Source: Anaeramoeba ignava BMAN
Lineage: Eukaryota; Protista; Anaeramoebae
DNA length: 64,000 nt
Assembly (NCBI GenBank): GCA_028826165.1
Contig: JAPDFW010000089.1
Span: forward strand, 240,032 to 304,031
Direction: 5' to 3'
Shown piece after piece: positions 28,664-51,949 of this stretch (position 1 is the stretch's first letter; the number at the start of each line of letters is the position of its first letter). The position numbers were made by a program, and so were the translations under genes. A model generated the notes under the pieces. The model was not told where the DNA came from, ran no database searches, and saw only the letters and a program-made list of their open reading frames with translations.

Positions 28664-29740
28664 TCAACGAGGTTTACAATCCAAATTATGAGGATTAACC
28701 TCTCTTTCCAAATTATCAATCTTAGCATATTTAAGAGAAGGTTGAGGATTATTAAACAACCCAAAGAAAAAATTAAGAACAGGCATAAAAGTATGATGAG
28801 CCCAATACCAAAAGGGTTCATAACTAACTTTAACATTTGGATTCAAAACAATATCAGTTCTATTTTTTGACCACAAGTCTCTACAAACAAGAAGACACTC
28901 AGAGGCCGAGCATTCATTTGCGGTTCTTTTTCTAAACAGGATATCCTCGATGGATTTGCCATCAAAAACAACAACACCATTCCAACATGAATAAACATTA
29001 AACGGTTCATTTCTTCGAAGTGCATTTTGTGCTTGTGGATCGCGGAAGTAAGGATATATCCCTGTGCAACTCTCCCCATTTAGATCTCTTGTGACCCAAG
29101 TGTCATAAAAAGAGAAATAGAAGTCCATTGCACAGGCCATGTCATATTTACAACTGCGTGTTTTGATAAGCTCCAAAATATCTTCTTTTCGAAAGTAAAT
29201 ATCATTAAGGAAAATCACTTTTATCACTAAATCTTCATTTTCATTGAATTCACTCAATTTGTAAAGCACTTTATTCCTCAATCTTGCTAATATCCCAATC
29301 CGATCCTCCCTTCGATCGCGTTTCCAAGTTTCCATTGTGATTGTATGATCGATATATCTTTCTTCAAGTTGTTCTTTTAATAATGAAAGCATTTCTTTTG
29401 TTTTATCTTGACTTCCATTTTCAAATATTGATACATAAGTATTTTTTCTCCCAAGAATTTGTATTAAATCCAATAATTCTTGTGAAAATTGTGGTAGTAT
29501 GTTCTCGTTATTATAGATTAATGCTGCTATGTAAAAGAACGGTTGTTGAACTTTCTTTATTCCGTCTTCATCTTCTTTTATATTTGAACAAAGTTCAATT
29601 ATTTTGTTTCTTTCAAGAATTTCTGTGTTTTTGTTTAGTCTTATCAATAAAAATGAAATTGAGAAACTGAATAGAATTATTCCGATTATGATATATTTTT
29701 TGATATTTTTTTTGAATTTTCTTAAAAGAGGTAAGTACAT
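28664..29740 (-). CDS. CAP59/CMT1-like alpha-1,3-mannosyltransferase (GT69), type II membrane protein
   Basis: 358-aa single exon with an N-terminal TM helix. Motifs YVSIFENGSQDKT, RIGILARLRNKVL, IFLNDIYF, DMACAMDF, FYDTWVTRD, VYSCWNG and SECLLVCRDLW. Confidence 0.9.
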   Translation of the reverse strand: MYLPLLRKFKKNIKKYIIIGIILFSFSISFLLIRLNKNTEILERNKIIELCSNIKEDEDGIKKVQQPFFYIAALIYNNENILPQFSQELLDLIQILGRKNTYVSIFENGSQDKTKEMLSLLKEQLEERYIDHTITMETWKRDRREDRIGILARLRNKVLYKLSEFNENEDLVIKVIFLNDIYFRKEDILELIKTRSCKYDMACAMDFYFSFYDTWVTRDLNGESCTGIYPYFRDPQAQNALRRNEPFNVYSCWNGVVVFDGKSIEDILFRKRTANECSASECLLVCRDLWSKNRTDIVLNPNVKVSYEPFWYWAHHTFMPVLNFFFGLFNNPQPSLKYAKIDNLEREVNPHNLDCKPR

Positions 29741-30159: not shown

Positions 30160-33100
30160 CTACTTTTCTCCATTTAATCTTTTCAAATAGCATCTTGAAC
30201 AAACCCTAACAGGTCGAAAAAAACTCAAATCATATAATTCCATTCTGTAATTACTGCAAGCAGAACAAACTACAATTCCACAAGCTCTACAATGATGTCT
30301 TCTTTCAATAAGATTGAAAGATTTATTGCAAATTTGACAAGCAGGAGCTTGTGAATCTTTAATCCAATGTGAATAAACTCCCTCATCAGGAAGACTCCAA
30401 AGAAATACTTCTCCTGTTAAATTTCCTGCATATAATCTTTTATTTTTATCTATATAAAGTGATGTAATAGAATATCTTGATGTTGCTTTCCGACATTTTT
30501 CAATTAATTCTCGTGGGTTTTTTGAATATTTTTTTTGATTTAAATTTTCTTTTGGAATTGTTTTCTTTCTTGTAAGTTTTTCATTTAAATTTGAATTTGA
30601 ATTTAAATTTGAATTTGAATTTGAATTTGAATTTGAATTTTGATTTTGATTTGAATTTGAATTTTGATTTGAATTTGAATTTAGATTTGAATTTGAATTT
30701 GAATTTAGATTTGAATTTGAATTTAGATTTTCATTTAGATTTTCATTTAGATTTTCATTTAAATTTTCATTTATATTTTGATTTGAATTTAAATTTTCAT
30801 TTATATTTTGATTTGAATTTAAATTTTCATTTATATTTTGATTTGAATTTAAATTTTCATTTAGATTTTCATTTTGATTTGAATTTAGATTTGAATTTTC
30901 ATTTATATTTTGATTTGAATTTGAATTTAGATTTTCATTTATATTTTGATTTGAATTTAAATTTTCATTTAAATTTTGAATTTGATTTTCATTTTGATTT
31001 GAATTTTGATTTGAATTTAGATTTTGATTTGAATTTGAATTTTCAGTTATATTTTGATTTGAATTTTGATTTGAATTTTGATTTGAATTTAGATTTATAT
31101 TTTCAGTTATATTTTGATTTAAATTTTCATTTTCATTTAAATTTAGATTTTGATTTGAATTTAGATTTTGATTTAAATTCAGATTTTGATTTGAATTTTG
31201 ATTTGAATTCAGATTTTCATTTTCATTTGAATTTTCATTTTCATTTTCATTTTCATCTAAATTTTCATTTTCATTTAAATTTAAATTTTCATTTTCATTT
31301 TCATTTTCATTTTCATCTAAATTTAAATCCCTACATAATCCTTTAATAATTTTAATTCCCCAAATACTAACAACTCCATTTTTATGTCCAGTAACATAAA
31401 CATGTCCTTCATCCCATTCTCCAAGTTGAGTTGAAGTAAAACAACTGATTCCTTCTGCTTCAACATTTTCAATAATTTTTTCACCAACAACAAATCCATT
31501 AATACTCATAACTCTTATTAAAGATTCTGTGCAAACAACAATCTCTCCAGAAATATCATTTACAGAGACAGAAACAATTGGTTCATTAAATTTGTAGTTT
31601 TTGATGTATTTTAATCTATGAAGATCCCAAACAATGCACTTGCAATCTTTTGAACCACTAACTGCAATCCCAAAATTTTTAGATAAAGAAATACAGGTTA
31701 TTTTATCACTATGTCCGATGAATCTCTGCAAAAGAACAAATGCAAATGATTTATCGGTATTCCCACTTAATGCATATTTAGAAACTGAATTGAAATCATC
31801 GAACAAATATTTCGAAATGTAAAATTTTCTCACTTGCGAAATTTGGCAATAAATATTAACAACTCCATCATCTCCACCAGTTCCAATGAATACATTATTT
31901 TCCTCAATCGAAATTGTTGATATTTTGCCTGAATGCACATTTTCTTGGACACCCATTAACTTGTTATTTTCCATTGTATATATTCGGAAAGACCAATCAA
32001 TATCAGCATAAGAAATGTAGCGAATAATAGAACTTGATGGAATGATAACTTTCTTCATCCCAACAGCGTAAACTTTGTCTCCAATAACGCGTATATCTCC
32101 AACACTTTCAGAAATTGTTTTGACTTTCTGTAATTTAAATAAATTCACAAACGAAAAATGTTCGAATTTGGAAAGTTTTTGACAAAAAAATTGTTCAGAA
32201 GAATTCCTTGAAAGCTCTGAAAAGTTGCTTTCTTCAACTTCTTTGGATTCAGTAACTTCATTATCTCCGTTTTTTGCGTCTTTTTCATCATCAGTGTTTT
32301 TGACGGTTTCTTTTTTGACATCATCGTTGATTATTTGTGATTGAATTTGTTGATTTTCCTTATTTCCATTGATAATTTCCTCATTTTCAGATACATTTGG
32401 TTTTTTTGTTTGATTTTTTGTTTCAAATAACAAGCCAGAATTGGATGCTTTTCTTTTTGGATGAGGCTTTTTAAAAAGCTGTTTTGGTGTTTGTCCAAAA
32501 TTATTAATCTGAGTTAGAACAGCCAATAAATCCGTGCGATTTGTGATTTTTGTCAAATCAAAAGTGTATCCATATGTCAGATAGTAAAAAACATTCAGTG
32601 CATTCTCAGCCAATTTTCCTTGTTGTTTATAACCGAAGATCAAATCAATCCAATTATGCAAATTTTGCGAGACATAATCACTTTCAAGAGCCTGGCGATG
32701 TATTTGAATAAAATTATAGGGATCATCATTAGACCACAAAGGAAGTCCCACATCTGAAACATCAATCCCATTGCTTTGCTTTTTGCCAAAGAAAAATTTG
32801 TTGTGATTCACAAGAAACTCGGGCATATAAAAAAACTCGGGAATCAATTCCTTGACATCAGAAACATTATTCACGCTTGCAGAAGCCCAAGAGTCTTGGA
32901 TAGTATGGAACATCCGATCCGGATAATCAAATTTGCCTCCTTGTAGTTTAACCGAATGCTTTGCAAAAGGCTCTAAACGTACAAGATATTGGAGCACAAT
33001 TCCTAAAGAAGAATAATGAGATCCATAGTGGAATTTTGGGATATTTGAAATGTTATCGTTCCACGACTCGAATCTTGAGCGGAAATACTCTGCTCGTTGT

Positions 33101-36100
33101 GGATCAAGTGCTCCCATTGGTTTGGACAAATCTCGATAAATGTTTGGATCTTTCAAATCAATTTTTTCTGAGGTGTAATCCTTAAGAATCCATGGGAATA
33201 CGGGATACTGAGAAAAATCCTGATAAGTTCTTCCAGCAAGTGTATTCAGATGAATTAAATACTGGAAGTTTGTAATTTCTCCCTTTTTCCATTTCTGTGT
33301 TTGTGAAGAAAGAAAAGACGCTTTTAAAAGGGATGTGAAACTAAATCCTATATCATAACTTTCAGAATTATTCGTAGTTTTTGCTCCTGTTAGTTGTTGT
33401 ATATCCCCAAATTTGGACGAAGAAAGACTGACAATTTTATCATAAACTTCATCGCGTTCTGAATTTGAGGTAAAATACAGGAAATATGTTTTCCCATTGG
33501 CAAGGAAAAATTCAAGTGCAACCGGTTGAAGACAATACTCTCTTTTTAGAACATCCTGGAAAATATCAGGACACCACTTTCGCACTCTGTGCTTTATAAC
33601 CTTATGCTTTGAGTTGTATTTACGCAGAATCCGATTTTCAATTCGGTTTTGAATAATAAACCAATCTTTTTGCAAATTTTCTTTTTCTTTTTCTTTTTCT
33701 TTTTCTGTATCAACTGTTTCATCTTCAAGATCCATATTTTCTGAAAATGGTGTTAATTCTACAATTTGATTAGCTTTTTTGGTCTGAACTATGAAATAAT
33801 TATCGAATAAATAACAGTTTTGTTGTGTCAGAATGAAAACTGCATTTTTTGAATTAAGTCCAGAAACTCTTGCGCAATTTACTTGTAAAATTATATTTTC
33901 ATCAATTTCAAAAAATCTTTTGAATCGTAAATCTTTAAGTAAATGATGCATTTCACTAACATATTCCTTAAATCTAACTTCGTTTAAATGAGCATTGATT
34001 TTTTTTTCTTCATCTGAATTTTCATCTGGATTTTGTGATTCAAGTTCCCATTTTTCTGATTCTTGTTTTATGATCTTATGTTGTAATTTTTCTTCATGAT
34101 AAATTTCCAAAATAAACTCGAACAAATCAGGATTTTCATTAGAATTTTGATTATTTTGATTATTTTGATTATTTTGATTATTTTGATTATTTTGATTATT
34201 TTGATTATTTTGATTATTTTCATTATTTTGATTATTTTCATCATTTTCATCATTTTCATCATTTTCATCATTTTCATTTTCATCAACTATTGTATCATCT
34301 CTAAATGACTTGTCCTGATTTAAAGTCGTTTGGCATAAATGTATTTTTGGTCTTTTATTCCTTTTCAATTTCTTCCTCATTCTAAAGGGTTCTTCAAATG
34401 TATCACATTTCCATTTTACATTATTTGAGTCGTTTTTATTATGATCCCAAATTGATAATTCTCCAGTTATTTCTCGTTTCGCAATTCTCCATTTATTTTC
34501 CCAATCATTCCTTCTTGTGAAATTGAAGAATAGTTTTGTATAATATCTTTTTCTCTCGGAATACTGTATTTCAGTTCTCATTGAATGCAAACTTTTAAAA
34601 TATTCGAAAATTTCTTGATGTTCTTCTTCCGCTTTCTTTTCAATCTTTTTGAGTCTTGATTTCCGTTTATTTTTCTCACTTTGTATTTTGGATTTCGAAA
34701 TTTCAAAGTTAGAATTGATATTTTTTGGGATATGTGATTCTAATAAATTCTTGATTTGTTCTTGTTTTTTCTCTAAAAACAAACGGAAATCATTATCGTT
34801 ATCAGCAAGAATAAAAAGAAATCCATTATCAAGATAATTCCTGTTCTCTGATCTGTTGATTCGATAAGAAAGAAACGGTCTTAAAAGTTCTGCGATTCTC
34901 AAAATCATAGTTTTCCAAATTTTCGAAGCAAGTTTGGAAATTGAATCGGATTCAAGAATCATTAACAAGAACATTTGATAGCATAAAAGTGATAAAAATC
35001 TTGTGCTGTTGTTATTTTTGTTGATGAGTATATTCGAATTCTCATCAATCAAATTCAACATAAAAAGTCTTTCTTGATCCATAACTTGCGAATGATCTGC
35101 TTGTTTGAGTAATAAATAAATTATAATTTCATTCATATAACGATAGTAAGAAATTAGACAAGCATGATTTTTTGGGTGTAGTTTGTTTATATTAATATTG
35201 AGCTGAGCGTCTAAGTGAAAACTATTTATTTTTTTAATCGTATAATTTTCTTGTGTATTTTTTTGTTGAAGAAATGAACTTAAACTTGGGTGAGTTTTTA
35301 GATTTGCAATTGTTTTTGCATAAGAATATTTATTTGAATTTGAATTTGAATTTGTATTTGAATTTGAATTTGAATTTAAATTTGAATTTAAATTTGTATT
35401 TGTATTTGTATTTGTATTTGTATTTGTATTTGTATTTGAATTTGTATTTGTATTTGAATCAATATCCATATTTAAAAAAAGATTTGGAGTTGAATAAGAA
35501 AAGTTATTTCCCTTTTCAGCAAGTTTTATAACAACATTTGAACAAAAATTGAAAATATCTTTAATTTTACTTTCAGAAAAAATTCCATTATAAACTCTTT
35601 CAATAAGAATATCTCCAAATTTGATCATATTTTTGGAGAATTTATGGTCATATTCGAGAGCAAGAAAGTTCATTTTTGATTCAAATGTTAAAAGAATTTT
35701 GAAAAAAAGTTTAGCTTGGAATTTTTGACAAAGCGAATCCTCAACATATAATGGAACAGATTCAAAAATGGTATCAAAAATTGTTGTGAATGAATTGCCT
35801 GTTTTGATATTCTGATGAAGAATAGTAATTAGGAATTTTAACAGCTCTTGTGTTGTTGGATTGTTCAAAACTATATCCGAAAGTTGAATTGCTTTAATTG
35901 TATCTGTATTAAAATCTGGTGTATTTAAATCAGAAGGTACACTATTGTTACTGTTGCTATTATAGATTAATGAATTTACTTGTTCATCTTCTGTTTGTTG
36001 GGGATTTAAAAGAAAGTTGTGATAATTTTCTGCAAAAATTATCCCAATAATAAGTTCGATAAAGTCGCTATTTGAACAAAAATCTGAAAAAGTAGGAGAA

Positions 36101-39100
36101 GAATCGAGCAACTTAACCCGGAAAAATTTTAAGATGAGACAATTAGTTTTAATTAAATAATGTAGCTCTTTAGAGACATCTCCGTTTTCAGAGTTTAATT
36201 TGCCGAAATTTGAAAACAAACCTCCAAGTAATTGCTTTTGGTTTTCTTGAACAATTTTGAGAATTGAGATTGTTGTGTTTGGAGAGTATATTTGTATTTT
36301 TGAAGAAGAATCATCAGCTCTTTTGGAGAGTTGGAAGTAAATTAACAAGCGATTTCATTTTCATATCAAAATATCTTTCTGTTTTCCAAACTGGAACACC
36401 GAGAAGTAAACAAAAAAGAGAATAGTAAACTGTTTCGTTTTTGTTGAGTCTTGATAAAAGAGGATCCAAAGCAAGAAATCCTCCTTCTTGTGTAAATTTT
36501 TGAATGAATTGCTGATTTGAAATTAAAAGACTCACAAAAATTTTGAAGGAGCGAGAAACAAATTCATGGTCAACATCTACTCTCATGAAATGGAACAAAA
36601 AACCATCTCCGTTGAAAACAGACAGGATTTTCTCAATTGTTTTGGCATCATTGAAATGGTAGAAAATGATTTTTTTGATATAATCCAAAATGCAAAGATT
36701 TGCTATCCAAAATGGAGGTTGAGATTTCACAAAATCTAAATCCGTAAAATCTTCAGAAAGCATATCATTGTATGCAATATCATCTTTGTTGACTGAGATT
36801 TGATAGCGGAATGACGATTTGACTGAATTTTGCTCATTGTTATAAAAAAGTGTTGATATGATATGTCTGCGGATCATTTCAAGTTCTTCAGTAATAACAG
36901 TTCTTTTGATCAAAGAAAATATGACAAAAACAACTTCCTGAATCACTTGGAATTGTAAAGTCGGGGTTCGCAAAAAATCAAGTAAATTTTGGATGAAATT
37001 AAGTTTTTTTGCTTGATGCATGTTGAAATCTACTTGCGAGTTTTCCTCAAAAAATAACCTCAAATTTGAAAAAAGAAATTCCAAAGTGTCTTGACTTTGT
37101 ATTTTTGTCCAAATATTAAAATCCAAAATAAATTTCGAGAAGGCAGTTAAATTCGAGATTATGAAAAAGTTTGATTTGCCAAAATTATTGCCAACAAATC
37201 TAAGAAGAATTTTAACAACAGATTTGTCAATTAAATCTCTTTTTTTATAAAGAAGATATCCAATATGATCATATCCATGAATTCTCTCCATTTCCCGTAA
37301 ATGCAAGTAATGCGACGATTCAAGCTCTTGGATAATCGAGAGAACACCTAGCAAGTCCTTTGTTTCTTCAGCTAATTCAATCAAGGGAATCAAAGCTTTA
37401 ATTCCCCCAATAGAAAGCATTTGAATCACAAATCCGCTACGTTTGTGAACATAAACATTTCCTCTAGGGAAAGCAAACGGTTCTCCATTTTGCAAAGAAC
37501 ACATATTAACAAGTCCCAAATTGCGTTTTTTGTTGAGTATTTTTGTGTATATATGGGGAGAGAGATGATGGTGGTGCTGATTCTCCTTATCCTTTAATTT
37601 CACAAATTTGTCGTGAGGAAGACTCGGCATTTTGGGTTGATACCGAATACTGCTATCTCTCAAACTTATCCGATTTATTTTCTGATAATATTGGAACTCT
37701 TTTGTTATATCCATTTCATTTTCTATCGACAACGAACTTTTCTTTTTGTGTTCCGAGATGCCATTTTCTTTGGAAATGATTTTGCCCTGATTTCCAAATT
37801 CTGATATTTTCTTGATAAAATTCGCAGAATACCCAAAAATAATCTTGTCATTCAAAAGAGGTGATGGGAGGTGAGCCAAATCAAATGCATTGAATTTTGT
37901 TTCGAGATCTTTTTCTTTGAGATTGGATAATGTTTGGTGGTTGATAACATCATATGTTTGGTAATCCTCAATCGAAGATGAGATGAAGGAAACACTAAAA
38001 TCCATCCCCATAACAAATAAAGTGTGTATTGATTGCGGACTCAGAATATATTCGCAAAGATAGCAATGACCAAGTTTCCACTTGATTGGAAGAGTATTGC
38101 CCAAAAAATTGCTCGATCCAAAAAATCCAGATATAGATGAGTTTGGAGAGTTAGAAATTAGAGAAGGATATGCACATTTTTGGCTCTCTTTAAAAATACC
38201 GTTGATATACAAAGAAATTTCACTTGATTGGAAACGGTATTTGGAATGAAGTAAAACTAAGTGATTCCATTGCCCTTCTTGGATATGATGGTGTAATTCT
38301 GTGATATTGTTATCGTTGTTTACAAAGACGGTGAGCTTGGTGTTGAGAAGCGATATTGTTTGAATAGGCTCCTTCTTGTCGTTTATGATTGAGAATAAAT
38401 CGAATTTCTGGTTTTGTTCGGTTTGGAAGCATTCGTAATAAAACCATAAAGATAAAGAATACCCTCCTGTTGGAGGCCATATTTGTTTGAAGTTTGGGAT
38501 TACAATCTGTGAGTATCCTGGGATTGTTAAGTCAAATTGAATGTGTGGTGGATTCTTTCCATTTCTAATGATATTAGAAATCAAATTGTAAAATGAAACT
38601 GGTCGTGTTTTTTGTTTGGAGTCTGTTAGGATTTGTAAGAGCATTTTGGTTTCTTTAGTCGAGAAATTAGATGGACCAAGAGTTTCCAGGATCTTGAATA
38701 AAATATGCTGTAAAAGATCTGGTTCTAATAAATAGAATTTTCTTTTGAATTGTTTCATCAACTTTTCTGGGAGATGAATATAATAAACAATTTCTCGATT
38801 TGTTGGATTGTGGAAAAGTAAATTGAATATCATAACCAAAAGATCGACTTGTTTTTGTTCTTGAAGTTTTGGCAGTAAGTTAACCGATATAACAAATGGT
38901 TCTGGATGGAAAATCTCTACATTTTCAAACTTATTATTTACAATTTCGTTTGTTTCTTGTCCAATTCTTTTTTCTTCAGCAAAATTTCCAACTGGATATG
39001 TTTTGTTCATATTTTTGGAGTTTTCCGAGATTGTTTCGGATTGTGTTGAATCACTATTTTGCTTAGAAAGTGAGTTATCTTCAACGGATTTACTTTGTGA

Positions 39101-42084
39101 ATTTACTGTTTTAGGCTCCTGATTCTGTATTTTCTGGTGGAAAAAACCAAAAATTTCAACCGCCAAATCAATAAGCATTGTAACTATCTCATAGCATGCA
39201 TCCTCATTTTCAGTTAATTCTGAAAGATATATGGACTCTGAAATATATGGAGCAACTTCCATTTCAAAATAGTTGCGGTTTACTTGATTATTACTTAAAG
39301 AAATTATCAAAATATTGATAATCTGCTCTATAAGTTCCAATTTTTTGAGGATTGGAGTTTCTGGGATTGTTGATAAAAATCCAATGATATTCACAATGCA
39401 TATGACAAATCCGTTGTATTCCCGGAATAAATCCTTATATTCATTTTTGATCTTGAATAATTGGAGAAATAATTGAATCATTTGTGTTTTAAATTCTATA
39501 TTTTCAAGAGGAATTGATTGAAACAACAATACCAATTCAGAAAAAATGTTCTCCATTTCATTTAAAGGTTTCTTATAGAAAATAAGAAGCAGTAGTTTGC
39601 TTGATTGCTGTCTATTTACTTCAAAATTAAGAGCTCGAATAATCAATTTAAATCCATTTGATGCTATGAAAGTATCAAGGGATTTCTGAGAATTTTGAAA
39701 TAAAATTTGTAAAGTATCTAATGCAAACGCAAATCTTAAATTGAAATTGGTAAATTTTTCATTTTCGTTTTCCTTTTCATTTTCCTTTTTAAATTTCTCT
39801 TTAAATTTAATAGATTCTCTAATTTGATCCAAGCAAACATCAAGAAAATGGATATCAGATAAAACTTTGGAATAAGTTTCATCAAATCTCATAAATTTTG
39901 TGAATAAATTATAAATCAACTCTAGTGAATCTATTGAAGTTTTTTCCTCTTTAATTAAATTCATTAAGATTTGGATTTCTTTTTTAGGAAGTTTGATCTC
40001 AGTAAATGCAATATGCTCAACCATTTTTAATAGGAAACTCTTTTAGAATTTTTGTGTGTGTTTTTTTTTTGATTTAAAATATAAATATTTAAAATATAAA
40101 TATTTAAAATATAAATATATAAAATATAAATATTCAAAATATAAATATTTAAAATATAAATATATAAAATATAAATATTTAAAATATAAATATTTAAAAT
40201 ATAAATATTTAAAATATAAATATTTAAAATATAAGTATTTAAAATATAAATATATAAAATATAAATATTCAAAATATAAGTATTTAAAATATAAATATTT
40301 AAAATATAAATATACTTTCACTTCGTGATGATATGAATCAAAATGAACAAGAAATACTTCAAGATTGCCAACTTTTTGTGAAATAGGAGTAATTATTTGG
40401 ATTAGAAGCATAAATGCTGAGTATTTGCTCAAGAATACAAAGTGAAAAAGAGTGATGAAGTTGTTTATTTTCGGCAGTTTCAAGAAATATTTTTACAAGA
40501 ACACTAAATGCTTGAAGATTTTTTATGCGATTACTTGTATTTTCTAATTGAGGAGATTTTCCAAAAGCAAGCAATCCATGCATATCATCTGACTCAATTT
40601 CAGGGATTATATCTGAAATACCGACTTGAGTAAAATCAGAAATTGCTGTTATAGTCTTTTTGAATAAGGCGCTATGTGTCTTTTTTGAATTGAGTAAAAT
40701 AATTTTTTGTATAATTTTGGTAATGATTTCATAACCCAATTTTTGAGAAAATTTATCAAACAAATTGTTTGAAATAGCAAGTGAATTTTTGATGAATTCC
40801 AAAACGATCAAAATTATATGCGATGAGAGTTTTGTTTTTGTATCAATATTATTATTAACAAATGTAATTAGTTGCAATATGATTTTTTCTTTCTCGATAT
40901 ATTGAAAAGATTTCGAATTAAAACCGAACTTTGTAAAATTAATAAGAAGTTTTTTATAAAATCTTAAAAACATTTCCTGAGATTTGGTGTGAAAAGAACA
41001 ATCTTGAATCATTAAAAGAAACTTTCCCATTAATTTTTCAGAAATTAATTTTATAATAGTTTGCTCTTGCTTTAAAAATGTAATAAAGATATGAGAAATG
41101 GTTGATAAAATTTTATGGAAATTTGTAAGTTCTTGAAATTGAAATTAAAATTAAGATTAAAATTAAAATTGAAATTGAAATTAAAATTAAATTTATAAAT
41201 AAAATTAAAATTGAAATTAAAAATACCATCATCTTTTTTAAGGTTTAATTTCCCTTTTTTCATATTTATATTTTGGGATAAGGCTTCAATTAAATGAAAC
41301 AATTCAATGTTTAAAGATGTTTTTAGCATTTCTGAAACATTAGATGTATTTTCACATAATTTTTCAATAGAAATTAATAACTTAAAATTCAAATCCTTTT
41401 CTTTGTTTGAATCTGAAAATAAAAAAAATGAACTAAAATTATTTTTAGATTGAAGAAAGTTTTGAATTTTTTCGTTAAAATTTAAAGCAAAAGCATAAGA
41501 TAATTGAGTTGTATTTCCGAATCTAATAAAATGGATTTTAATTTTAATTTTAAATTTTTAATATTAAATTTTTAATATTAATTTTACTCTGAAATATTTG
41601 TTGGTTGCTCACAAAAAATTTGATAAAATTGTGAAACAATAATAATTATTTGAGATTCTTGGTCTTGATTAGTTTTTTTCAATTCAAATTGTTTCCAATT
41701 TTTTTTCAATTCGTTTAATAAATTGATATTCGAATTGTTTAATTTAGATGATGATTTTTTTGGTGGTTTTATTTGAGTTTTGTTTTTGTTTTTGTTTTTG
41801 TTTTTGTTTTTGTTTTTGTTTTTGTTTTTGTCTTTTGGGATTTTGAATTTATCTAATGAAAGAGCTTTTTGTTTTATTTGAATTTTAATTGGATGGGGTT
41901 TATTTAAAATTTTATTATTTGGTTCTTCTTTGTCGTTCTCATTTAATTGTAAATTAGTATCAATTTTAATATTTTGGGAATTATTTTTTGTTGTTTCCTT
42001 TTGTTTTTCTATTTCTGTTTCTTTTTCTGTTTCTGATTCTTGTTTTGATTTTTTTTCAAAAAGTCCACGAAAAAAAGATCTCAT
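30160..42084 (-). CDS. Giant BEACH-domain protein with ConA-like, PH, BEACH, WD40 and C-terminal FYVE domains (WDFY3/ALFY/LvsA-like)
   Basis: BEACH: ITNFQYLIHLNTLAGRTYQDFSQYPVFPW...HYGSHYSS...DVKELIPEFF...INNFGQTPKQLFKKPHP. WD40: GHSDKITC...VSGSKD. FYVE: WIKD...RRHHCRACG...VRVC. Introns near 41587-41523, 41226-41070 and 40314-40037; frameshifts near 40375 and 36322. Confidence 0.9.
40037..40314. repeat. 15-bp (AAATATAAATATTTA)n array in a BEACH-gene intron
   Basis: Same unit and orientation as the array at 21481-21866. Confidence 0.85.
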
Positions 42085-46740: not shown

Positions 46741-49700
46741 ATGACTTTTATTGAAAAAATAATTTTAGAAAGATTTAAAAGTTACAATTCAAAAACAGAA
46801 ATTACTGAATTTTCACCAAATCATAATGTCATTTGTAAATGTTATTTATTTATTTTTTTTTATTTTTTCATTTTTTCATTTTTCATTTTTCATTTTTTAT
46901 TTTAAAGTGGGTAAAAATGGATCAGGTAAATGTTTTGCAAAAGATACTCTCATTTTAATGTTTGATGGCACTCAAAAATATGTTCAAGATTTAAAAACTA
47001 ATGATGAAATTATGGGAGATGATTCAAAACCAAGAAAAATCATTTCACTATCACAAGGATTTGGATTAATGTTTCAAATAAGCGCAAAAAATGAACCTTT
47101 TCATTCAATTAAAATTAATAATGAGCATATACTTTGTTTAAAAAAATCAAAACAAATCAATTTCGGCAATTTAAATGTTTCCTATTATTTTCAAAACAAG
47201 AAAAAAAATCAAAAAGAAATGGCAAAAAATTTAATCAGAAAATTTATCAGCAAAAACAATTTTCAGTTTAATAACGAGGAGAATGAAGAAAAAATAATTG
47301 AAATTTCTGTAAAAGATTTTATCCAAAAAGATTTAAAATGGAAAAAAAAGCACTTGATGTATCGAGTTCCTGTTGATTTCAAACATCAAAATATTCCCAT
47401 TTTTCCTTATTTACTTGGTTTTTTACTTAGTTCCTTAGAATATTTTAATTTTACAAGGAAAAAAAAGATTGCTAATCAAGAAGAGTTTTACAATTATGTT
47501 TCTGATTCTCTTTCTTCAATAACTAAGAACACAAATATTTTGAATCAATTTGATCAAAATTATCAATTTATTTTTCAAAAGCTCAAAAAATTTCATCTTT
47601 TAGAAAATGTACATATTCCTTTGTGCTATAAAGCAAATGATAAAAAAACAAGACTTCAAGTTTTTTTGGGATTTTTGGATCATTGGGAATTTTTTAGAGT
47701 AGAAAAAACAACAATATTTCTCATGAAAATTTACAATAATCAGTTTGCAAACGATTTGTTATTTATTATTAAATCTCTTGGTTTGTCAGCTCATATAGAA
47801 AGAAATTCTGTATTGATCAATTTACAAAATTTGGAAGAATTAACTTATGATTTTGAAATTAAATGTATTGGAGAAGATAGTTATTATGGATTTCAAATTG
47901 ATGGGAATGGAAGATTTGTTTTACCTGATTTAACAGTTTCTCATAATTCTAATATTTTTCATGCAATAAGAATGGTTTTTGCTGGTATTTTTACTTCTCT
48001 TCCTTTGAAAGAACGTTCTGCTTTAATATATGTGAGTTATTTTCTTTTTTAAAAACAAAAAAAGAAAGAATTAATTCTATTCCACTTTTTTTTTATTATT
48101 TGATCAAAATTTAAAAGGAAGGAACAAAAGACTCATCTAAATCTAATATTGAAATTATTTTAGATAATTCAAAAAATACTTTTCCAGTAACCAGAATTTT
48201 TATAATTAATTCACTTTTTTTTTTTTTTTTTAATAATCAAAATTTATAAATTCTATATTATTTCTTCAAGATTTTAGATCATAAAGTTCATATTAAAAGA
48301 ATTTTAACAAAAACTAATGATGAATTTTTCTTAAATGAAAAGAAAATCAAGTAAAAAACACAAACAAAAAACTAAAAAAATGCAAAAATTTATTTTCATT
48401 TTTCAATATTTTTTCATTTAGAAAAAATGAACTTGCAAACTTTTTACAAAGTGCAGGATTTATTACAAGAAATCAATTCTATTTTTTAGAACAAGGACAA
48501 GTATTTAAATAATATGATTTTCTATTTTTCTTTTATTAAATTAACTTGATTTCCCACTTTTATCTTTTCTTTGTGATTATTTTGATTGAAAGGTGACAAA
48601 ATTGGCTTTAATGAAAAATTTTGAAAGATATAAATTAATTAAAGAGGTTATTGGTACTAATTTATATGAAAAAAAAAGAAAGGATTGCATGAAAGAACTA
48701 AATAAAAACAAGATTGAGATGAAAAAAATTGAAGAATTGATTCGAGTTCTTGAAGAAAGAATTAATGAATTAGATGAAGAAACAAAAGAGTTGCAAGAAT
48801 ACCAGAATGTTTTAAAAGAAAAAAGAGCATTAGAACATATTCTTCTTACTCGAAAACTCGAATTAATCAAAATTAAAATTGAACAAATTGAGAAGCAAAT
48901 TGATTTAAGCAATAAAGAATCAAATTCTGCAAATCGAGATTATGATACAGCCAAAACAGTTTTTAAACAGAAGAAGAATGAAGAAGAAAAATTGAAGAAA
49001 AAGCTTAATCAAGCAAATATCGAAATGGAAAATCTTCGCCAAGAAAAAAACCAATTAATCAAAATACGTTTACAAAAGGATCTTGAAATGAAAGAATTGA
49101 TCAAAAAAAACCAATTTATGGAAGAAGAAAAGCAAAAATATGGAAATGAAATTGAAGAGATTGAAGAAGAAATTCAACAAAATCAACTGAAATTGGCAAA
49201 AATTTCGCAAAAATTTGAGCAAAAATTTAAGAAAGAAAACGAAATTGAATCACAAATACAACTTCTTGAAATTGAAAAATCAAGTATATTGTCATCAAAA
49301 ACAAAATTTACCTCATTTAGAAATGATGATGAAAAAAAGGAATGGATTGAAAAAGAAATTGAAAAATTTATACATTTGAAAGGTAAAGAAGAAAATCTGA
49401 AAAAAAATACAAGTACAGAGATTGAAAGGATAGAAAGAGAAATGGAAGTGATGAGAGAAGAGATTAACAAAAATCAATCAAATATTTCAGAAAGAAGAGA
49501 AAGGATTGATAAATCAAGTAAAGAAATCGTTGAGTTAGAAAAAAAAAGAGACGAAATTCTTCATAGAAAAAAGTAAGGAAAAAGATGAATATAGATTAGA
49601 AATGAAATTGAATTGAATTGAATTAATTTTTTTTATCTTTGTATTATTATTATTATAATTAGAATTTTATCAAAATCAAAATTGAAAGCAGAGGAAGAAC

Positions 49701-51949
49701 TTGAAAATGTTTTAAAAGAACAATTCAAATATCAACTGAAGCTGGAAAAAAAATTAAAATGGGAGGTTTCCAAGGCATTGAAAAAAGTCAAAAAATATGC
49801 CAAAAATGAAGTTAATTCAGGAATTTTTGGACAAGTAATTGAATTATTTGATTGTGAAGACAAATATATTCCATCTATTGAAATTTTTTCAGGAGATGAA
49901 ATATTTGCAGTTGTTGTTGATAGCAAAGAAACTATTGAAAAAATTCGCAAGAAGTGCTTTTCGAAAAATAAATATGGTTCAATTATCTTTATACCTTTAA
50001 ACAGTATATCAGAAAAAAAGGCAGAGTCAACAAAAAAGGAATATTTGCAAATGTTTTCTGAGTCTAATCCAAATGTGATTCCCATGATATCTGTATTAGA
50101 TTATTCGCCGACATTCAGAAAAGTTTTTGATAAAATTTTTGGAAATGGATTTATTTGTTCTAAATTTGAAGTTGGAGTTGAATTATCAAAAAATAATTCT
50201 ATTCGATGTGCAACTTTAGATGGAGATATAATTAATGGAGCAGGTTGTATTCAAGGAGGATATTTCGATCCTCAAAAGTCATCAATCAAAATGATGAAAA
50301 AAATCAAATTTCTCAGAAATAAAGCAAAAGAATCGGCATTAAATTTAAATAAAATTTTGAAAGCAATTCGTGATGATGATGAAGAACTATCATTAATTTT
50401 AATTGAACTTGAAAAGCTTAAAATGAAATTCAAACAAAATACTGAAACTTTTGATCAAATTTTAAGAGAGCAATCTGAATTAGAAGAATCAATTAATTTG
50501 CACCAAGAAATGTTGAATAACAAAAATAGATTATTTTCTACATTTGATCCAAATATTAACAATTTAGAAGAAAAAATCAATCAACTAAAAAAAGAAATTT
50601 TAATTGAAAATTCTGATGAATTTTTGAAAGAAGAGATTGAAAGATTGGAAAAGTTGGAAGAAGAAATTAATTCCTTAAAAAAAGAATTATTAGATTATTC
50701 AACAAAAAGAGGCAAAGTAAGTTTATTTTTATTTATTTTTGGAATGAAATTTATTATTAAAACAATCACAAAAAAAAAGTTGGAAATTGAAAAGGTTGAG
50801 CTTGAGAACTTTATCAAAGAAAATTTATCAAAACAAAAAACTGTTCTTTCTTTAAGAATGAAAGATTCAAGAAATCAAAAAATAGAATATGAATTGAATT
50901 CAAACAAAGAAGAACTCTTGAGGATAAACGGAAGAATTGAAACGATTTCTTTAGAAATGAAGAGTTTAAATGAAATTATCAAATCTGTTGAAGAAGAAAT
51001 TTTCAATTTTGAAAGTGTTTTAGATGAGGAATCGAGTCAAAAACAAACAATCTCAGATCAAATGAATCAAAAGTCAAAAGAACTTGATGAATTATTGAAT
51101 AGAAAAAGGAATTTGAAATTAAGAGAGGAAAAACTTTATGGATCTATTCAAGAAATTGGATCTTTCCCTCTTGATATTCTCCAAAAGTATCAAGATGAAG
51201 AAACATCAAGAATCCAAATTTTAAGAGAAGAAAAAAACGAAGAATTAAAGAATTTTGAGCAAGTTAATAATAAAGCAAAAGACCAATTTAGTCGAGGATT
51301 TAAGGAAAAAGAGCAATTATTAGAAAAAAAAAGGTTAATTGAAGAAAATTTATTGAAAATTTATGGATATATAGAAGATTTGGATCAAACAAAGGAAAAG
51401 ATTTTCAATGAAAAATTTAATGAAATTCAAAAGAATTTTGCACAAGTTTTTAAAGAAATTATTCCCAAAGGAATTGCTGAATTAATTATTGATTATGAAA
51501 AAAATCAGAATGAAAATGAGAAGAAAAATATTTTTGGAATTAGTATTTATGCAACATTTCAAGAAGAATCACAAGAAGAAAAGAAGAATATTATTGAATT
51601 TTCAGGTGGACAAAAATCAATTATTTCTCTTTCTCTTTTATTTGCTTTTCAAAGAACAGAGCCTGCACCTTTTTATCTTTTGGATGAAATTGATTCTGCT
51701 TTAGATCCCCAATTTAGATTAGCAGTTGGAGAACTTATTTATAAAGAAAGTAGAAAATCTCAGTTTATAACAACCACATTTAGACCAGAATTTCTACAAT
51801 TTGCAGATTGTTATTTTTGGGTTAATTTCCAGAATAAAGAATCTAAAGTGAAAAAAATTGGAAAAAATGAAGCTATTGAAATTATTAGAAGTAAAGAAGA
51901 AAATGAAGAAAGACGAGAACAATCCAATTTTGATAAAAATTCAATTTAA
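46741..51949 (+). CDS. SMC3: Cohesin subunit SMC3, intein-containing precursor; about 8 exons
   Basis: Exons 46741-46834, 46908-48031, 48118-48186, 48271-48350, 48422-48500, 48593-49572, 49663-50716 and 50780-51949. Motifs FKSY...FSPNHNVI, GKNGSGK[intein]SNIFHAIR, LQSAGF...QGQ, hinge GIFGQVIEL...AVVVDS...FIPLN...TLDGD...IQGGY, FSGGQKS, PAPFYLLDEIDSALD and QFITTTFRPE (SMC3-diagnostic). Confidence 0.9.
46931..47947 (+). mobile_element. Intein (339 aa, Hint domain plus degenerate LAGLIDADG homing endonuclease) in the SMC3 Walker A motif
   Basis: In-frame insertion between K and S of GxNGSGK|S. Block A CFAKDTLILMFDGTQKYVQDL...MGDDSKPR (VMA1-like); block B NEHILCL; block F/G YYGFQIDGNGRFVLPDLTVSHN followed by Ser+1. 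HEN remnants PYLLGFLLSS, HIP..YK, RLQVFLGFLDHW and FANDLLFIIKSLG. Confidence 0.95.

Follow-up and report, generated by a model that had tools for sequence, protein, structure and literature searches.

A predicted class-1 intein with a decayed endonuclease in the Walker A motif of an Anaeramoeba ignava cohesin SMC3 gene

Does an intein interrupt the ATP-binding loop of a cohesin subunit in Anaeramoeba ignava BMAN, and if so, is it a control element or the relic of a mobile one? We addressed this question in a window of 64,000 nucleotides (contig JAPDFW010000089.1, positions 240,032 to 304,031), which is the whole stretch of DNA analysed and whose own numbering is used below. At 46931-47947 on the forward strand, we found an open frame of 1017 nt (339 codons) running from CFAKD to His-Asn, flanked by GKNGSGK upstream (46910-46930) and SNIFHAIR downstream (47948 on). 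Because the alignment of the downstream host part (C-extein) to human SMC3 begins at human residue 39 (E 4.9e-131), the insert falls precisely at the junction of the Walker A Lys and Ser, the P-loop site named in the initial annotation. SMC3 homologues of 1187 aa lack the intein, and the A. ignava insert is in-frame within a conserved host protein. The features of the gene are listed here.

46741 to 46834, + strand: SMC3 exon 1, encoding the initiator Met and the beginning of the N-extein (ATG; open frame to a GT donor)
46835 to 46907, + strand: spliceosomal intron 1, 73 nt, phase 1 (GT..AG; 23 nt upstream of the intein)
46908 to 46930, + strand: end of the N-extein, Walker A GKNGSGK to the invariant Lys39 (sequence motif)
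46931 to 47947, + strand: predicted class-1 cis intein of 339 aa whose LAGLIDADG domain has decayed (PF05203, PDB, fold, family alignment)
47948 to 48031, + strand: start of the C-extein to the end of exon 2 (human SMC3 alignment from residue 39; exon map)
48118-48186, 48271-48350 and 48422-48500 (within 48118 to 51949), + strand: SMC3 exons (exact mapping of KAJ5071384.1)
48593-49572, 49663-50716 and 50780-51949 with the stop (within 48118 to 51949), + strand: SMC3 exons (exact mapping of KAJ5071384.1)

Exon 1 and positions 46908-46930 encode a 39-aa SMC N-terminus ending at the Walker A Lys39, and 48118 to 51949 encodes the coiled coils, the hinge and the C-terminal head, with Pfam SMC_N and SMC_hinge both matched. 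Six more introns follow intron 1, and the stop codon is at 51949. The C-extein has 1171 open codons, and this SMC3 retains intact ATPase motifs (Q-loop, signature, Walker B and D-loop). The precursor is predicted to be 1549 aa and the spliced SMC3 1210 aa. Against the human SMC proteins, the C-extein matched SMC3 far ahead of the best SMC2 (5e-39) and the best SMC1 (3e-17), and it carries a hinge and ABC-type head motifs. These similarities identify cohesin SMC3 as the host gene, in agreement with the initial annotation.

A. ignava has a second SMC3 gene, on contig C137, with an intron of the same position and phase as intron 1. The two proteins are 28-34% identical exon by exon, the window gene being the more divergent paralog and the C137 gene the more canonical SMC3. 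The Lys-Lys pair acetylated by Eco1, which is typical of SMC3 rather than defining, reads Thr-Asn in the window gene (48271-48350) and Lys-Lys in the C137 gene. The window SMC3 with Thr-Asn may be a specialised, acetylation-independent cohesin subunit.

Two further genes were seen elsewhere in the window. On the minus strand, 30160-40024 encodes a BEACH/WD40/FYVE protein resembling WDFY3/ALFY as two overlapping ORFs (1236 and 2062 aa), with an intron or frameshift near 36330. An intronless gene of the CAP59 family (cryptococcal mannosyltransferase 1; Pfam E 1e-72) lies at 28664-29740, also on the minus strand.

The public protein of the SMC3 gene, KAJ5071384.1 (Anaeramoeba ignava), begins at Met10 inside the intein and lacks exon 1, the Walker A motif and Cys1. 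It nevertheless keeps the inserted segment as coding, which speaks against the segment being removed from the RNA as an intron or arising as an assembly artefact. GT dinucleotides do occur at 46926 and at 46932, but we found no GT/GC..AG pair around the insert whose excision restores an intact Walker A, and the insert is therefore not expected to be a spliceosomal intron. Since the 339 codons are also open and fit a Hint fold, and the region is present in five sequencing runs from two studies, an intron or an artefact is hardly credible.

Several lines of evidence define the insert. Pfam Hom_end_hint (PF05203) matches intein residues 1-338 above its curated cut-off (E 6.9e-22). A PDB sequence search returned the yeast VMA1 intein (PI-SceI) and fungal Prp8 inteins as top matches, and Foldseek with the AlphaFold model of the intein (mean pLDDT 78, pTM 0.75) retrieved PI-SceI at E 3e-15, with Prp8 inteins also matched. 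The VMA1-like Hint region proposed in the initial annotation was thus recovered by both profile and fold. The class-1 junctions it described are likewise all present (Cys1, block B His66, His338-Asn339 and Ser+1). Taken together, sequence and modelled fold confirm the prediction of a class-1 cis intein of the VMA1/Hom_end_hint type in the SMC3 Walker A motif. Its parts are as follows.

46931 to 47146, + strand: N-terminal splicing region with block A Cys1 and block B Asn63-x-x-His66 (invariant alignment columns)
47402 to 47434, + strand: LAGLIDADG block C, decayed, with Ser168 at the position of the catalytic Asp (family alignment)
47660 to 47689, + strand: LAGLIDADG block E, decayed, with Trp252 at the position of the catalytic Asp; second endonuclease subdomain shortened (alignment)
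47837 to 47947, + strand: C-terminal splicing region, blocks F and G, ending in His338-Asn339 (PDB match, alignment)

All 99 environmental relatives and all 30 from the same genome keep the block B His. Asn replaces the usual block B Thr in the window intein and in all 99 full-length environmental relatives. Class-3 inteins are recognised by a non-nucleophilic first residue and a block F Cys (WCT triad). A class-3 P-loop intein of the kind in Anaeramoeba cluster 1 was ruled out here, residue 1 being Cys and block F reading YYGFQID.

On these residues, splicing would start with an N-S acyl shift at Cys1 assisted by His66, followed by transfer to Ser+1. Cyclisation of Asn339, assisted by His338, and an O-N shift would then complete the reaction, and the precursor would yield an SMC3 with GKNGSGK-S restored and an inactive 339-aa intein. 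Ser+1 is the Walker A Ser, a Mg2+ ligand as well as the splicing nucleophile. Because the insert separates the Walker A Lys and Ser, ATP binding by this SMC3 would need prior splicing; the initial annotation had made the same point, and it follows from the position. It had also proposed the ligated peptide as a target for mass spectrometry. That peptide spans a Lys, and trypsin would therefore cut exactly at the ligation junction.

The endonuclease region has fared differently from the splicing regions. The window intein keeps 29/39 and 15/21 of the conserved family columns in its two splicing regions and 24/44 in the LAGLIDADG region, a difference that is expected if splicing is still under selection. 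Neither Pfam Hom_end nor LAGLIDADG matched over block E and the second endonuclease subdomain. Judged from the alignment, the homing endonuclease is dead, and because both LAGLIDADG catalytic aspartates are lost, the intein is unable to home. Both aspartates are kept in 79 of the 99 environmental relatives versus 0/30 own-genome copies, and the expansion of this intein family in A. ignava thus looks extinct. GC and GC3 of the intein equal those of the host exons, which points to an old insertion.

An active LAGLIDADG homing intein was considered and ruled out on Ser168 and Trp252 at the catalytic positions of blocks C and E. That the element is still moving among P-loop genes is accordingly very improbable. 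The LAGLIDADG-shaped domain is present and the family is widespread in the genome, as such movement would predict. However, besides the missing aspartates and the shortened domain, the closest own-genome copy is only ~35-40% identical to the window intein, and we found no intein-free cohesin SMC gene in A. ignava.

To place the window intein within its family, we compared it with relatives inside and outside the genome. The own-genome search gave 67 matches, representing dozens of related inteins, of which about 30 same-family copies were analysed. Flanking motifs were used to name the hosts, among which are Lon, dynein, MCM, SRP54, eIF5B, Pch2, RecQ, HBS1-like GTPases, XPB, ABCA, a P-type ATPase, phosphatases, VMA and Prp8. 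Related inteins were seen in three phosphatase paralogs (Cdc14-like by motif), with the catalytic Cys of HCxxGxGR as the +1 residue. Frameshifts like that of the C137 SMC3 intein described below occur in the ABCA intein and in a dynein copy at the end of contig C92.

Outside the genome, 6519 relatives were found at E<=0.001. In 119 of 136 environmental inteins parsed automatically from the top matches, the insertion follows a Walker A GK, and P-loop insertion is thus what this family normally does. Among viral sequences, at least 567 stretches encode a relative, and 24 of the best 80 lie on giant-virus MAG contigs. One close relative adjoins a capping enzyme and an Erv1-type oxidase, and phage helicases also host relatives.

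The inteins of this genome have been surveyed before. For A. ignava BMAN, Gallot-Lavallee et al. (PMC10710043) give a count of 103 inteins, in line with the remark in the initial annotation that Anaeramoeba carries many, and their text describes splicing demonstrated for three Anaeramoeba inteins and homing between the P-loops of unrelated proteins. P-loop homing is discussed there for the class-3 cluster 1. Their cluster 15 is described as virus-linked, with 24 BMAN host proteins and kin among Prp8, VMA and viral inteins, to which the published network connects it at about 30% identity; the similarity pattern of the window intein fits this cluster, an assignment made by the published description. 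The main text mentions SMC or cohesin 0 times. Because that survey combined Hint profiles with tBLASTn, the window intein is very probably one of the 103.

We then compared the SMC genes of A. ignava with one another. Nine hinge-bearing SMC loci were found, and four are of the cohesin type: the window SMC3, the second SMC3 (C137:155500-162500) and SMC1 genes on C82 and C61. Each of them has an intein at one shared position, the junction of the Walker A Lys and Ser (339, ~291, 359 and 367 aa). No intein occupies this site in SMC2, two SMC4 copies, two divergent SMC loci of unassigned type, SMC5, SMC6 or two Rad50-like genes, whose DNA flanks resemble those of the intein-bearing genes. Within the C137 SMC3 intein, an A run near 156950 contains a frameshift of one base, which was read through as X and is likely an assembly error; a search of an independent gene call for comparison returned no A. 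ignava protein. Profile searches for Rad21/Rec8 and Eco1 came back blank, as did their controls, and were uninformative.

The genome possibly holds a duplicated core SMC set, with two SMC3, two SMC1 and the divergent loci on C111 and C80. The SMC4 copies on C104 and C38 are near-identical; the copy on C38, a 60-kb contig, shows breaks in the C-terminal exon and is possibly a haplotig.

The second SMC3 bears on a possible escape from the need to splice. The intein might splice poorly if the divergent window SMC3 were dispensable or ATP-independent and the other SMC3 the essential one. The divergence of the window gene, its lost acetylation Lys-Lys and a public model without exon 1 fit this idea. 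However, all splicing residues are kept and the long open C-extein retains its ATPase motifs. Moreover, the other SMC3 also carries an intein at the Lys/Ser junction, so there is no intein-free backup. We regard a dispensable paralog as improbable.

The sister of SMC1 is SMC4, and that of SMC3 is SMC2 (bioRxiv 10.1101/2024.01.07.573240), and because of this pairing at least two invasions, or losses, are needed to explain the distribution. Similarity scores of the window intein to the other SMC inteins do not exceed those to the Pch2, Lon or dynein inteins. Intein trees are star-like; a clade of the four SMC inteins is neither rejected nor established by the AU test (p 0.35), and the same holds for the SMC3 intein pair (p 0.36), both relative to a sub-optimal free tree, and the SMC1a and SMC1b inteins fit better as sisters in the tree test. 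With these sequences, trees cannot separate independent invasion from inheritance for the SMC inteins. The cohesin-only pattern would arise by chance for 1/6 of pairs if SMC1 and SMC3 were each invaded once, and with a chance of 1/70 if four independent invasions fell among eight distinct genes. The pattern is suggestive, and no proof of function.

The initial annotation had gone further, suggesting that the intein acts as a post-translational switch on cohesin, perhaps through a redox- or metal-sensitive Cys. Such a domesticated switch would gate the cohesin ATPase post-translationally by conditional splicing (oxygen or redox, Zn or Cu, or a cell-cycle partner). Both heads of every SMC1-SMC3 pair would depend on splicing, and condensin and SMC5/6 would not. 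The pattern among the SMC and Rad50-like genes (4/4 cohesin genes versus none of the others, with similar flanks) is what it predicts. The host is an anaerobe, and copper inhibits the related Cne Prp8 intein in vitro via Cys1 oxidation (PMC6805012).

This suggestion did not hold up well on closer comparison. Nothing singles the window intein out among the ~30 same-family copies, whose hosts are functionally unrelated proteins, and a sensitive Cys1 is a general property of class-1 inteins. Beyond Cys1, no Cys pattern is common to the four SMC inteins, and all four lack an extein Cys just upstream of Cys1. Chance is enough to explain the pattern if SMC1 and SMC3 were each invaded once before duplication, and the better fit of the SMC1 inteins as sisters is in line with this order of events. 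In addition, SMC is absent from the eight intein sites that PMC10710043 describes as shared with A. flamelloides. Conditional gating is thus unlikely. We give as little credence to its broadest form, in which inteins domesticated as a cohesin-wide gate would let oxygen or metal stress selectively switch off cohesin. If true, such a gate would be the first case of an intein controlling a motor of eukaryotic chromosome architecture.

The reading that best accommodates these observations is that of a dead, formerly mobile, virus-associated P-loop intein that is now trapped and probably splices constitutively by the class-1 route, with no regulation. A VMA1-like intein associated with giant viruses and phages would have entered the SMC3 Walker A Lys/Ser site through non-allelic homing, at the time when inteins expanded in the A. 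ignava lineage, and its homing endonuclease would have died afterwards. It probably persists because any deletion that is not exact would damage the ATP-binding loop. The kept splicing residues, the lost endonuclease residues and the intact host frame and ATPase motifs speak for such a trapped relic; the cohesin-only pattern among SMC genes, which could hint at selection, speaks against it. The position, motifs, fold, dead endonuclease, family and paralog pattern are observed, whereas splicing itself, the invasion route and the lack of regulation are inferred; splicing is most likely constitutive rather than regulatory.

The same site is occupied in prokaryotes. Among the 80 loci listed in a GTDB pattern scan, 41 have GPNGSGK-Cys in an SMC N-terminus. 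In 26 of those 41 listed, a whole intein followed by the SMC C-extein was read (GPNGSGK/C..HN/SN), and two of the listed SMC loci were confirmed by NCBIfam. The listed hosts include DPANN archaea, Thermoplasmata, Chloroflexota, Patescibacteria, Armatimonadota, Planctomycetota and others, with inteins ranging from 194-aa mini-inteins to ~560 aa, mostly 460-560 aa. Comparison of these inteins with the four A. ignava SMC inteins found no similarity (best E 0.8-5). Allelic descent from the prokaryotic SMC inteins was ruled out, the site being shared and the sequences dissimilar. The Lys/Ser junction of the SMC Walker A motif is thus a hotspot invaded convergently by two unrelated intein lineages, a prokaryotic one and the one in this eukaryote.

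These results qualify the novelty expected in the initial annotation. Our literature search found only archaeal cases of SMC Walker A inteins in print, the archaeal SMC inteins mentioned in PMC4760082, and no text describing a eukaryotic SMC or cohesin intein. Weak searches for other eukaryotic SMC inteins found none. The main text of PMC10710043 names no SMC. Novelty is lower than the initial annotation assumed: the inteins of this genome had been surveyed, archaeal SMC inteins were known and the Lys/Ser site is occupied in many prokaryotic SMCs. As a single element, the intein adds one to the many already published for this genome and is probably part of that dataset. The modest additions made here are that every A. 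ignava cohesin SMC gene carries an intein and that these converge with prokaryotic SMC inteins on one site. The dead endonucleases across the own-genome family and the corrected public gene model are further additions. In addition, the four inteins found naturally in cohesin heads could serve directly as reagents in tests of conditional splicing.

Among known systems, four groups stand closest to the window intein. Like BMAN cluster 15 as published, it is VMA1/Prp8-like and class-1 in type, with unrelated hosts and Nucleocytoviricota relatives, and its own-genome sisters sit in Prp8-f, VMA, Lon, dynein and MCM. With the yeast Sce VMA1 intein (PI-SceI) it shares the Cys1..His-Asn ends, the Hint sequence and fold, an inserted LAGLIDADG-type domain and an Asn near the block B His. 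It differs in length (339 versus 454 aa), in its dead endonuclease, in the +1 residue (Ser versus Cys in VMA1) and in its SMC3 host. Its closest relatives, at 30-41% identity, come from giant viruses and phages; these P-loop inteins likewise follow a Walker A GK in helicases, AAA+/Lon proteins and packaging ATPases. Most of those relatives keep both catalytic Asp (79/99), whereas the window intein keeps neither, and none of the parsed matches has a eukaryotic SMC host. The prokaryotic SMC inteins, finally, share the identical insertion point with the window intein and are unrelated to it in sequence.
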